Source of the DNA: Guillardia theta CCMP2712
Taxonomy: Eukaryota; Protista; Cryptophyta
Reading direction: 5' to 3'
Assembly (NCBI RefSeq): GCF_000315625.1
Contig: NW_005434659.1
Location: 495,142-559,141, forward strand
Length of the DNA: 64,000 nt
The notes under the pieces were generated by a model, which saw only the letters and a list, made by a program, of their open reading frames with translations, made no database searches and was not told the origin of the DNA. Position numbers and translations under genes: made by a program. This document shows positions 8,631 to 13,174 of the stretch, piece after piece (position 1 is the first letter of the stretch; each line of letters begins with the position of its first letter).

Positions 8631-10009
8631 ATGGCTTTCAGCGCAAGACTGATCTCCATCCTAGTCCTCCTCCCAGCCATCGTGCCTTCTCAACAGCAGA
8701 CGCCCCATCCCTCTGAGCGCCTCAGACCTCCCGACGTGGATGTGTCGTGGGACGATCACTACCATAGCTTGCAGGAGCATGTCGACACCCACGGTCGTCT
8801 TAGGCTGGCATCGCTCAAGTACAAGGACAGCTCTCTGTACGTCTGGCTGATGGAGCAGCGGAAGAGGTGGAGGACAGGAGATCTGCAGCACGGACAATCG
8901 ATGAGGCTGTGGAGGTTGGGGGCACTGGAGCCGATGAGGGCGGTGTGGGAGACGAACTTCTCGCTTGTCATGCTCTGCAAACAGCACATGGGGTGTGTGT
9001 CGTCGGGAAGCAAGAGAGGAGAGAGTCTCGCTGTCAGCAATGAGCTGAGGAAGAACAATGTGCACCGATGGGTCGAGAAGCAGCAGGCGTACGCTGCGAA
9101 GGGCAGCCTCACTCCCAAGAGGAAGGAGATGCTGGAAAGCCTCGGCATTGTCTTCGAGAGGTCCGAGCATGATCGTGTCCTTGCCTTGTGTGAGCAGGTG
9201 TGCAGGTTCAAGTCTGAGTGGGAGCAGAAGTACAACTCCCTCTGCTTGTTCAAACAGACCTTTGGGCACCTAGACTTGCTGAGGAGGGAGGAGAGCACTA
9301 CTTGGAAGAAGCAGGAGAGGTGGGGGAGCGGGTAAGGGCAAGACTGCCATGTGCTGCTGACGCGCCGGCCACAGGCAGTCGCTCTGCCGTTGGTTATACA
9401 ATCAGAAGTTTCAGCTGAAGAGAGACACCAGCAAGGCGCATGCTGAGAGGTGACTGAGGGCCCGGCCCCCGGGGAGGTTGACCCTTCAACTAGGTTGCTT
9501 GCCATGGGCGTGGTGCTGAGAAATCGCGGCCGGTGCGTGAGGATGAGGGCGAGGGTTTGAGAGGTGACGTGATGCGGTAGAGTCTGGAACAAGCGCTTCA
9601 ACCATCTTGCGTCCTTCAAGAAAGCGAATGGTGAAGGAGGATGATGGTTGGATGATTCGACCTGACCTGACCCCCCTTCTCCCCTCCTCTCCCCTCATCT
9701 CATCTCTGCTCCTCATATTCCTTTCCTCCTCCTCCCCTCCTTCAGGTCACGTAAAGGTCCCCGTCATCTGCAAGGAGAACCCAACGCTGGGCCAGTGGGT
9801 CATCAACCAGAAGCAGCGAATTCGACAGGGCCGAATGCCAGAGGTCAGACCTCTCCTCTCATCGCTCGTTGTCATCCTGAACTCCTCGCCCTCCTCCTTG
9901 TCCTCTGCTGCAGGAGAGGATGAAGCAGTTAGAGACCCTGGGATTCGCCCGCAAGGCGTCAACCGCAGGGGGCAGAAGCAAGAAGGAAGCAGCATCGGTT
10001 CAGTGTTGA
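8631..10009 (+). CDS. Helicase-associated (HA, PF03457-like) repeat protein with N-terminal signal peptide
   Basis: Four W...L..(F/H)...(H/N)G...L..W...Q.......L..LG repeats after splicing, e.g. WNKRFNHLASFKKANGHVKVPVICKENPTLGQWVINQKQRIRQGRMPEERMKQLETLGF. Hydrophobic leader MAFSARLISILVLLPAIVPS. Confidence 0.85.
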
Positions 10010-10315
10010 ACCTTCACTGCCTCTCCTTCCCCCTCCCTTGCTCTTGAGGAGCGGTTCGAATTTCTGTCAAGATTTTTTGATGCAGTAGAGATATCGATAA
10101 GACAGGAGTTGAGGTAAGCAAAACAATCTACAAGCAGCAGTATCGAGAGAACAGACGAAATGGTGGAGGCTTTGGATTGCGAGGAAATAAGCAATGAAGA
10201 TGACAGCCAAATTTTCAGGTTAAACAGGAGGATGGTAAATAGTTTGCACACACGTATCTCAAACCTCAACCGACAAACTTCATGTGAATCTAAGATGACC
10301 GAGCATCTCTCAGCA

Positions 10316-12779
10316 TCAAGCGTTAGACTTCTCTTCACTTCGTGTGACCGACTCGATTGCTTTGAGTTCCTTGCTCATGTCTGACAGGCACGAGTATCGC
10401 TCCTTCGGGTCATGTTGGAGACAGCGGCAGATTACCTGCGTACAAACATCGAAACTATAATCAGCAGGAGCAGGAGCAGGAGCAGGCGCAAGATGAGCAG
10501 AAAGCACTGTTGCAAGTTCCATGAGGAGGAGCGCATGTACCTGGCATAGGCGAGCTGGAACATTTGGGTTCTCCTTGCTAGGAGTTGGGGGCTCTGCCCC
10601 GGCCGCCCCCCTCATCAGCTTCTCCCACATCCCTCGCTCATTGTTGAAGTCTCCCGCAGCCCCAGGTTTCCATGTCAGGTCCTTGTCGACGCTATAGGGA
10701 AGCTTCCCTTGTTGGAGCGTCAGAGTCAAACTCAGAGCCCCGCACTGTCAGCTCTTACCCGTGAGCACCTTGTACATGAGAACGCCTGGACGTGCCGTCA
10801 GCGACAGTCGATGGAGAAGCTGACGTCATCACCGAGGGAGTAGAAGTCCGTAGAGACAGACCGAGAGCTTGAATCGCACAGAAGCTGCTCGGGCGACATG
10901 TAAGCGTACGTGCCGGCCGGAAACGCTGAGTCTGCACTAGAGCGTGAGAATCACTGGATGGCTCTTCCTCCCTCCTCCACCTCATTTCCGTCACCCTCCT
11001 CCCCTACAGATCTCCTCTGCACTTGTCTTCTCCCCCCATCCCTCCCGCCCTCCCTCCCTCCCTCCCTCCCTCCCTCTGACGCCTCCGGCGATGGATTTAC
11101 AATCACCTTGCTCTGCGACAAGCTCGCCAAACATGTCATAAAACTCTTCCTGCAGCGACCATGAGCCACCACAGCACACATCGCCGAACACGTTCACCAG
11201 CGAGATCAGACGATCCCCGTTCACGTCATATTTCGCAATCATCCGAAGAATCTGTTCCTCCGACGGGCGCACGCCGACAGCCCGGAAGCACTGACCTCCT
11301 ACCTCACAAGACTCTCCAACAAGCGATGCAGCCTACCTGGGCCACGTCACCGCTGGAGATGACTCCGACCTTCCTACGATCCTGCAGCTTCAACGTCACC
11401 ATGGAAGCACGTTAAGATGAGCACGACCATGGATTCGAAGACACTCTTGATCTTTCTCATTGTGTCCTCTCCGTACGTCTCAAGGGTGCAAACCCCCTAC
11501 ACGATCAGTGGTCTGCCTCAACTGCTCCATCCACTCACCGACTCATCGTTGGTGTTGGTCCATTTACCAAAGAGACAGCCTGAGAAAATTTCAGTCTCAG
11601 CCGGCGGCAAGCATCACACTCCCACCCACCTTGTGCTCCTGTCGCGGACCCAAAGTCGATGAGGCGATAGACTGTCTTCCCGCCCTGTGCGCTCCGAATG
11701 ACATTCTGCATGACAACGCAAGTCATGACATGACGGGCAAGGGACAGCATGCGAGGAAACCTGAGGCTTCAAGTCACGGTAGATGAAACCTGCCGAGTGA
11801 ATCGAGTTCAAGGCCCGTATGAGGTCCTGGGCTACCTGAACTCGGGGTGTCAGAGCTGGTGCTGCTGGTCACCCACATACGCGAATGGCCTCGGTGCTCT
11901 CAAGAGCTCCTTCCTGCTCGATCAGCTCGTCCAGGCTGACGCCATCGACATACTGCATGACTACATAGCAGACTCCATTGCTCAGCCCATGATCGAAACA
12001 CTGAGGAAGCAAGAGTCACGATGACCAACGAAGCCAAGAGGGATACTCGCCCGAGGAACGTGCGGGCTGTCGATCAGGGACAAGATAAGACCTTCTCGCA
12101 TGAGAATCGGCTCCTCGCCCTTCCTCGACTTCATCAGCTTGACTGCCACAAATTCGTCTTCGTCTGAAATCCCAGGGAGTGCATTGACACGTCCATCAGC
12201 TTCCCGTAACACCCTCGCCTTGAGCACCATTCCAAACGATCCTTGTCCCAGCAAAGTTTGCATCTCCAGGGAAGAACGCAGTGCAAATGGCAGTGAACTC
12301 CAGAGCTCCCTCGATCGATCTAGAATTTCAAGTTCCTTCGGGGCAATAATCCTTTTCCCTCCCGTCGGCACATCCGAGTTCGGCTTGCCGAGATAGTTCT
12401 GAAGCTGCGCCATTCTCCTCTCCTCCTTCCGCTTCCTCGCCTCCTCCCTTTCTCGTCTGAGCTGGTTCTGCTTTTCTTCGATGCGGCGATTCAACTCATC
12501 GATCTCGTTGCTCACAGGCTCGCTCTTTGCCTTGAGGCGGAGGCTCCCGAAAGATACACTTCGACACTTGACCTTGCCATCAGCAAGCGGCTTTCTGCAA
12601 ACCCTGATCGAGTGATCTACAACGTTAAGTGGTGCGGTAAAAGCTGATTGTACGTGAGTTGATCTGGTGTTACCCAAAGTCACTGTCTCGCCCAGCCCGT
12701 CAGCACGATTGACAATCTGAAGAAACACAAACAGCACAGTGAAGACATAGCGTGAAGGCTCTTGTCGTAGAGCTTGCAT
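10316..12779 (-). CDS. PknB-like Ser/Thr protein kinase with an EF-hand pair inserted in the activation segment; possible bipartite plastid leader
   Basis: Spliced over 11 introns: LGQGSFG, VAVK, YRDLKPQN, IDFG, [EF-hand lobe], GTYAYMSPE, DFYSLG, LTGKLPY, PTPSKENPNVPARLCQVICRCLQHDPKERY. Confidence 0.9.
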
Positions 12780-13074
12780 GAGACTGGAGGTCCTGTTTTT
12801 GCTTGCAATTACGACAAATAATCCTTTTTTTGGTATCATAATGATCCTCAAAATATCAGGCAAACTTTCCGCCTGCTTCAGATCATGAACCTGTCACGTT
12901 GTGTTAACCATTGGCAGATAATTCATAAGTTGCTTCCGTTCATCCCTCAAACCCCTCCTCCATGAAATACTTCCCTGCTCTTTTTCATCCCATCTCCCTC
13001 CTCTTTCATCCCTCTTCATCTACCCATATCCAACCCCTCCGTCTCCCTTTCCGCAACCCCCTCCTCCCTCCTCC

Positions 13075-13174
13075 NNNNNNNNNNNNNNNNNNNNNNNNNN
13101 NNNNNNNNNNNNNNNNNNNNNNNNNNNNNNNNNNNNNNNNNNNNNNNNNNNNNNNNNNNNNNNNNNNNNNNNNN
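13075..13174. other. Assembly gap (100 N)
   Basis: Run of N flanked by CT-rich low-complexity sequence. Confidence 1.

Follow-up and report, generated by a model that had tools for sequence, protein, structure and literature searches.

An EF-hand pair inserted into the activation segment of a PknB-like protein kinase family of cryptophytes

Can an entire calcium-sensor lobe sit inside the activation loop of a protein kinase and, if so, does Ca2+ act on the enzyme through it? The question is raised by GUITHDRAFT_104043, a gene of the cryptophyte alga Guillardia theta CCMP2712. It occupies positions 10316–12779 on the minus strand of the 64,000-nucleotide (nt) stretch of contig NW_005434659.1 (positions 495,142–559,141) that we analysed and refer to as the window. 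An earlier note, made from the DNA letters alone, had proposed that a series of small exons of this gene, once joined, places a calmodulin-like EF-hand lobe between the DFG and SPE motifs of a kinase. In known EF-hand kinases the sensor lies beside the catalytic domain and acts through the displacement of an autoinhibitory helix, whereas here it would lie within the activation segment, where most kinases are controlled by phosphorylation. Were the enzyme indeed switched by Ca2+, a second messenger would be coupled to catalysis through a distinct mechanism, and the kinase would be a natural counterpart of engineered domain-insertion switches. The first half of the question can be answered directly: the insert is present in the mRNA, it has the profile and the fold of an EF-hand pair, and the kinase motifs are intact.

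The EF-hand exons are part of the mRNA

According to the splicing model and the transcript contigs, the gene consists of 13 exons that encode 567 residues in a single open frame, from the annotated ATG (12779–12777) to a TGA stop codon (10318–10316). Eleven of its 12 introns are GT–AG and one is GC–AG (12001–12050); ten are 42–55 nt long, and the remaining two are 105 and 175 nt. The DFG motif (11649–11657) is located in exon 4 (11630–11705), which encodes the end of the catalytic core and terminates in phase 1 after ...SATGAQ. The SPE motif (10888–10896) is located in exon 10 (10833–10931). Both motifs lie on the minus strand where the earlier note had placed them, and joining the exons between them yields exactly the peptide it had given. 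The count of introns from DFG to SPE has to be raised from five to six (introns 4–9), and the separation of the two motifs is 115 residues rather than about 118. The six introns are all GT–AG, with lengths of 50, 42, 46, 46, 48 and 175 nt.

The insert itself is spread over exons 5–9. Exon 5 (11539–11579) opens it with a conserved GCLFG motif and a flexible linker. Exon 6 (11428–11496) contains the end of the linker (C-T-L-E-T-Y-G) and, from about position 11469, the entering helix of EF-hand 1. EF loop 1, DRRKVGVISSGD, is encoded at 11346–11381 within exon 7 (11337–11381). Exon 8 (11198–11290) contributes the exiting helix of EF1, the inter-EF linker, the entering helix of EF2 and the first ten residues of EF loop 2 (DVNGDRLISL, 11198–11227). 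The final two residues of that loop, EE at 11144–11149, the second of which is the position-12 Glu and residue 418 of the 567-residue model, come from exon 9 (11107–11149), together with the long exiting helix FYDMFGELVAEQ; this exon also ends in phase 1. Intron 9 (10932–11106), likewise in phase 1, is unusually long for the gene (175 nt against 42–55) and contains a low-complexity run of the (GGGA)n type. Beyond it, exon 10 carries the invariant Asp of a QD motif and the P+1 loop PAGTYAYMSPEQ, and the C-lobe begins here.

Three independent studies supplied transcript contigs, which were placed on positions 10000–12950 of the window. All 12 introns, including the GC–AG intron and introns 4–9, are absent from these contigs at exactly the modelled boundaries, so that every junction is confirmed, and one contig of 3,275 nt spans the whole gene. 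Since the contigs lack the introns, spliced RNA is their only possible source. The share of sampled words present was about 0.85 for DNA runs and about 0.55 for transcript contig runs.

The insert has the profile and the fold of a calmodulin N-terminal lobe

The length of the insert sets the gene apart from other kinases. In 205 of the 206 kinases retrieved from outside the family described below, DFG and xPE are separated by 7–39 residues (median 24), and the sole outlier proved to be another member of the family, within which the spacing is 114–148 residues.

Pfam domain searches were run on the deposited protein of the locus (P0021), whose insert is identical to that of the spliced window model, and on an orthologue (P0161). 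The Pkinase match to P0021 is obtained in two stretches (E 5.9e-28), which flank a match to EF-hand_7 at residues 358–420 (40.3 bits with a curated cut-off of 30; E 4.2e-10). This is the split arrangement that had been predicted for the spliced protein. EF-hand_7 scores 41.0 bits on the orthologue, 45.3 bits on another relative, P0138, and 46.2 bits on the open frame of a G. theta paralogue.

In the AlphaFold2 model of the orthologue's kinase region (mean predicted local distance difference test score, pLDDT, 84.9; predicted template modelling score 0.81), the kinase is of the normal bilobal shape. DFG is followed by a disordered linker (residues 176–195) and then by two successive helix–loop/β–helix units (196–272), the final helix being long. 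When the window insert is modelled alone, helices are predicted at 33–46, 56–65, 72–82 and 92–109 and strands at 53–55 and 89–91, with pLDDT of 86–92 in the core. The result is two helix–loop–helix units with a short antiparallel β bridge. The pLDDT of the linker is below 50 in both models. A Foldseek comparison superposes the insert model on the calmodulin N-domain 3ucw with a target template modelling (TM) score of 0.91–0.92 and a root-mean-square deviation of 0.8–1.0 Å over 70–73 columns, at 25–26% identity, and the N-domains of centrin and troponin C match likewise. The parallel with the calmodulin N-lobe drawn in the earlier note is thereby borne out, and the EF-hand fold on which it had made its reading depend is present. 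The best superpositions are those with apo or Mg2+ forms; the predicted conformer is closed and apo-like, and it is uninformative on switching.

The order of elements after DFG is a flexible, Cys-containing linker of about 30 residues, EF-hand 1, EF-hand 2 with its 18-residue exiting helix, the QD motif and the P+1 loop. The exiting helix ends some 6–8 residues before the P+1 loop, to which it is connected via the invariant Gln-Asp. In the models, the EF pair is thus tethered loosely at its N-terminal side, through the disordered linker, and tightly at its C-terminal side. Three Cys residues of the insert are invariant or nearly so across the family. The disordered linker contributes two, within GCLFG and C-x-L, and the third opens the EF1 exiting helix (QCF). 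These residues could be joined in a disulfide or serve the activation segment as a redox switch.

The kinase core is PknB-like

In an alignment with bacterial kinases, the G-loop, the β3 Lys, the αC Glu, the D.K..N residues of the catalytic loop and DFG are invariant or nearly invariant, and the orthologue is matched by Pkinase with E 2.8e-36, again in two stretches. As the catalytic residues are intact, the gene product is expected to be an active enzyme, namely a catalytically competent Ser/Thr kinase with a PknB-like core. Bacterial Hanks-type kinases are the nearest relatives of the core outside the family by sequence search. In a Foldseek search against PDB, the top ten matches are all Mycobacterium tuberculosis PknB (target TM up to 0.87), and CaMKII appears only from rank 11. 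A shape search of the ESM Atlas returned ten rows, all bacterial and aligned over about 262–280 residues, that is, over the core only. Moreover, a profile of the N-terminal part of the family gives 87–93 bits for bacterial kinases versus 56–71 bits for the best other G. theta kinases. Prokaryotes dominate the databases, however, and the evidence is a ranking of similarities, so that these results point to a bacterial relationship of the core but do not amount to phylogenetic proof.

Signal-peptide-like N-termini are found in the family, and in several members the apparent +1 residue is Phe or Trp. Bipartite presequences are established in organisms with plastids derived from red algae, which is the basis for reading these N-termini as a targeting feature. 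The N-termini therefore suggest targeting into the complex plastid or the periplastidal compartment. Together, the bacterial-type core and the targeting-like N-termini bear on Ca2+ signalling in complex plastids, which is poorly understood.

In G. theta this part of the protein is encoded by exon 1 (12051–12890), which comprises the 5′ part of the transcript, the signal-peptide-like N-terminus, a charged helix, an LWSSLP motif, the G-loop and the β3 Lys, and which is bordered on its 3′ side by the GC–AG intron. A conserved, highly charged helical segment rich in E, R and K precedes the kinase domain in one subgroup of the family, subgroup A (approximately residues 88–125 of P0021; also in P0002, P0145 and P0161), and the motif LWSKLP...R..Y is found directly before the G-loop throughout the family.

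The insert is conserved in a cryptophyte kinase family

Relatives were collected by an exhaustive search with exon 1 and by two word-indexed searches. About 20 clusters were recovered, all with the insert in an identical register. Common to them are GCLFG, C-x-L-x-x-YGE-x-T, the EF pair and EEFxxMFxELVxxQD-x-x-PAGT; GC..C is conserved family-wide. All labelled members are cryptophytes (Guillardia, Hanusia phi, Rhodomonas salina and Teleaulax amphioxeia), so the same insertion does occur in other algae. Members of subgroup A keep at least one canonical EF loop. Loop 2 is the canonical one in Guillardia, Hanusia, Rhodomonas and an MMETSP sequence; in P0145 it is loop 1.

Comparison of the Guillardia gene with its Hanusia-type orthologue indicates where the protein is constrained. 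Synonymous sites are saturated (proportion of synonymous differences, pS, 0.6–0.86). The proportion of nonsynonymous differences (pN) in the insert is 0.044, the lowest of all regions, compared with 0.115 and 0.153 in the two kinase parts and 0.336 in the N-terminus; for the linker it is 0.015. No other part of the protein is as conserved as the insert, which by these sequence comparisons is under strong purifying selection across cryptophytes.

A second G. theta gene (L003, G000:C81:387122–390700, minus strand, at about L003 1076–2650) belongs to the same family. One of its open frames, of 225 residues, includes the catalytic loop, DFG and an EF pair, and matches Pkinase and EF-hand_7 in one piece. 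The EF pair after DFG has a fully canonical loop, DIDGDGSIGYEE. If two 57-nt introns are assumed, a further and more degenerate EF pair seems to precede AGTHGYMPPEQ in this paralogue, which would bring its EF-like units to four; a repeated ...MYGELVA motif suggests internal duplication of the EF-pair unit. The paralogue has no introns at the positions of introns 4 and 9.

A further homologue, P0163, from a cluster of 45 sequences, is an intronless open reading frame of 619 residues (L010:6001–7860). The architecture is therefore supported independently of splice junctions, both by the open frame of the paralogue and by this homologue. L010 is a gene-dense environmental genomic contig from ENA, 13.9 kb long and with 56.5% GC, which also encodes a lipase, a choline-transporter-like protein and an ankyrin protein. 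An intron-poor genome behind it would be unlike that of G. theta, and the family may reach beyond the sampled cryptophytes. A giant-virus origin of this contig was considered and is unlikely, given its GC content and algal-type genes.

Outside the family, the same architecture was not found in shape or feature searches of the ESM Atlas, whose scope leaves out small clusters. The feature search returned ordinary CDPK-like clusters and is uninformative on the position of the insert.

Relation to known kinases and EF-hand proteins

Among kinases with their own EF-hands, CDPKs have four of them C-terminal of the kinase domain, after an autoinhibitory junction, and CCaMK has a C-terminal visinin-like domain (PMC3499706; PMC3696010). 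Like these enzymes, the cryptophyte proteins combine a Ser/Thr kinase and EF-hands on one polypeptide, an arrangement in which Ca2+ could act without free calmodulin. CDPK1 structures are even the top PDB sequence matches of the cryptophyte protein, since both parts match. Unlike in CDPKs and CCaMK, however, the EF pair is located between DFG and the P+1 loop and there is no junction helix. The Pfam searches of P0021 and P0161 revealed no EF-like domain after the kinase domain, and the core is nearest to bacterial PknB rather than to the CaMK group to which the CDPK core belongs.

The only described EF-hand inside a kinase domain that we found in the literature searched is that of FAM69 (DIPK1A-B), metazoan kinases of the secretory pathway for which direct Ca2+ control has been proposed (PMC3696010). 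There, a single predicted EF-hand motif of about 26 residues lies in the N-lobe, between αC and β4, of a divergent, Cys-rich kinase-like family (PMC3696010). The cryptophyte insert, in contrast, is a full EF pair and lies in the activation segment; the kinase is of the classical Hanks type, and the two families are not related in sequence. The earlier note had not recognised the architecture from any known kinase. This view needs qualification, because an EF-hand within a kinase domain had been predicted before, but it holds for the activation segment: no description of EF-hands at that place was found in the literature searched, the coverage of which is incomplete.

The site of the insertion does have a precedent. 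In plant AGCVIII kinases such as PINOID and phototropins, an insertion of 36–118 residues lies between the Mg2+-binding loop and the T-loop/P+1 loop (PMC3499706). It occupies the same topological site and shows that large inserts are tolerated there. The AGCVIII insertion is variable, has neither EF-hands nor another recognised fold, and is known for localisation signals. AGCVIII kinases also combine an AGC-type core with a DFD motif and a C-tail/PIF motif, and their insertion is unstructured (PMC3499706). DFD and the C-tail are absent from the cryptophyte kinase, which has DFG, a folded EF pair and a PknB-like core.

Bacterial Hanks-type kinases (PknB, StkP, PknA/E) have the closest core and share the P+1 motif GT..Y[ML][SA]PEQ. 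They differ in having 20–39 residues from DFG to xPE and no EF-hand. The cryptophyte proteins, for their part, have signal-peptide-like N-termini and lack PASTA or transmembrane modules.

As to the insert, the N-lobes of calmodulin, centrin and troponin C have the same fold at about 25% identity. The regulatory lobe of cardiac troponin C, which combines one functional and one degenerate site, resembles the insert with its one canonical and one degenerate loop. Those lobes are free-standing or terminal and bind a target helix, whereas the insert is joined at both ends into a regulatory loop of an enzyme. Leishmania LmjF.22.0810 was rejected as a precedent, as the paper on it describes a pattern similarity of only about 80% in C-terminal regions and no inserted domain. 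The defining features of CDPK/CCaMK, FAM69 and AGCVIII kinases are each missing from the cryptophyte family, which is outside all three and represents a kinase with intrinsic EF-hands in a new topology.

Is the insert a Ca2+ switch?

By analogy with other EF-hand sensors, we propose that this kinase is switched intramolecularly by Ca2+, its sensor being part of the activation loop of a PknB-like core, and we put the probability of this at roughly 0.55. Binding of Ca2+ at loop 2 would alter the angle at which the two EF2 helices meet, as in those sensors. The exiting helix would then move and, as it ends so close to the P+1 loop, its movement would displace this loop, along with the invariant Asp, with respect to the catalytic RD pocket. 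Substrate access or activity would in this way be gated according to Ca2+. The invariant Asp may substitute for an activation-loop phosphate, since no conserved Ser/Thr is found at the site.

Ca2+ control of the activation segment is plausible. EF loop 2, DVNGDRLISLEE followed by F, agrees at every position with the canonical 12-residue pattern (PMC6920834), in which positions 1, 3, 5 and 12 are ligands, and the claim that it keeps its ligands therefore stands. Several observations weigh against the proposed switch. Position 6 of loop 2 is Arg; the pattern allows it, but Gly is usual there and Arg likely weakens Ca2+ binding. Loop 1, as had also been seen, is degenerate: its positions 3 and 5 are occupied by residues that are not ligands, so that only one of the two loops is canonical. 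Finally, a second part of the family, subgroup B (P0011, P0162, P0163, P0029 and others), keeps the insert without any canonical loop, which implies some role independent of Ca2+, at least there.

The main alternative is one that we regard as possible but distinctly less probable than the Ca2+ switch. The EF pair could be a structural or docking module that works independently of Ca2+, with any remaining Ca2+ site being structural only. Such a module, a pseudo-EF domain, might recruit a substrate or partner, mediate dimerisation or localisation, or lock the activation segment in one conformation, active or autoinhibited. It would account for the persistence of the insert at the same site in subgroup B and for the degeneration of loop 1 in Hanusia as well as in Guillardia. 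The very strong conservation of this degenerate loop and of the linker likewise indicates constraints other than Ca2+ ligation, and the insertions at the same site in plant AGCVIII kinases serve localisation rather than ligand sensing (PMC3499706). What this explanation does not readily accommodate is the retention of ligand residues, which is hard to explain if Ca2+ is irrelevant: a loop canonical at all positions is kept in four lineages of subgroup A, a different canonical loop is kept in a fifth, and the G. theta paralogue retains DIDGDGSIGYEE. The one-site, four-unit and pseudo-EF versions within the family offer ready comparisons for dependence on Ca2+ ligation.

It is improbable that exons 5–9 act as an alternatively spliced cassette, with regulation through the ratio of isoforms instead of, or besides, Ca2+. 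The layout of the gene would suit such a cassette well. The five exons amount to exactly 291 nt, or 97 codons for residues 334–430, bracketed by the phase-1 introns 4 (11580–11629) and 9, and skipping them in silico (11630 joined to 10931) keeps the frame. The product, DFGSATGAQ-DSAFPAGTYAYMSPE, has a normal activation segment with a DFG–SPE spacing of 19 residues. Transcripts that skip the EF exons had been named beforehand as an outcome that would speak against an EF-hand insert; the joint of 11630 with 10931 is absent from the contigs of all three studies, although contigs drop rare isoforms and the sole raw-read run, of which about 6% was sampled, yielded a single read for the gene. Moreover, the insert is present in every full-length relative, it is the most constrained region of the protein, and both the paralogue and P0163 encode it without introns at these boundaries. 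The positions of introns 4 and 9, which flank the insert exactly and in the same phase, are also compatible with a module inserted into a pre-existing intron.

That the EF exons are chance in-frame pieces, a mis-assembly or parts of another gene can be dismissed, and nothing spoke for it once tested. Single exons taken alone do give only weak partial Pfam matches, but this is to be expected of pieces of 23–55 residues. The transcript contigs and orthologues refute the idea, and the Pfam match of the joined protein, the fold, the constraint and the intronless P0163 contradict it as well.

A tentative history, for which the odds are well short of even, would start from a single ancestral insertion of a calmodulin-type sensor in cryptophytes, followed by divergence into one-site, four-unit (C81 paralogue) and pseudo-EF forms, in proteins targeted to the plastid or periplastidal compartment. 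If true, the family would provide a direct route from Ca2+ to phosphorylation in endosymbiont-derived compartments.

Database record, gene model and further transcript features

The feature is real, expressed, conserved and under selection, and the protein is public, yet it is uncharacterised, misnamed and partly mis-modelled. The deposited protein P0021 (XP_005837209.1, EKX50229.1, UniProt L1JPN7) has 553 residues and already includes the insert; the idea that splitting over small exons had hidden the insert thus applies to the open reading frames and not to the public gene model. The automatic UniProt name of L1JPN7, "Calmodulin", is misleading. No mention of the identifiers of GUITHDRAFT_104043 was found in the literature searched.

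XP_005837209.1 is wrong at two junctions. It misses the GC–AG intron 1 (12001–12050), whereby the β4–β5 segment CFDHGLSNGVCYVV is replaced by intron-derived residues, and it uses a later acceptor for intron 12 (10436–10540), which removes the 11 residues VICRCLQHDPK of kinase subdomain XI. The transcript-based model restores both, the latter in exon 13 (10319–10435; CLQHDPKERYS and the C-terminus), and agrees with the full-length Hanusia-type orthologue P0161. Scored with a family profile from which both species had been left out, it reaches 370.3 bits, versus 310.0 bits for the deposited model. The corrected model is thus supported by the transcript contigs, by the orthologue and by a gain of 60 bits on the family profile.

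At the 5′ end, the transcript contigs reach beyond exon 1, with at least 49 nt more on the upstream side of about 12890–12892. The sequence of this additional 5′ exon was found neither in the window nor in the assembly, and it probably lies in the N-gap at 13074–13173. There is also an in-frame ATG at 12839–12837, 20 codons upstream of the annotated start, and the frame is open up to the start of exon 1. Given this open frame and the upstream extension of the contigs, the true N-terminus may differ from the annotated one.

The introns around the EF exons are retained in none of the contig pieces listed. Towards the 3′ end of the gene, contigs of low depth keep introns 10, 11 and 12 (10409–10567 and 10679–10861; depth 6–60, versus 41–281 for the spliced form), and a minor fraction of the transcripts is unspliced at these three introns.

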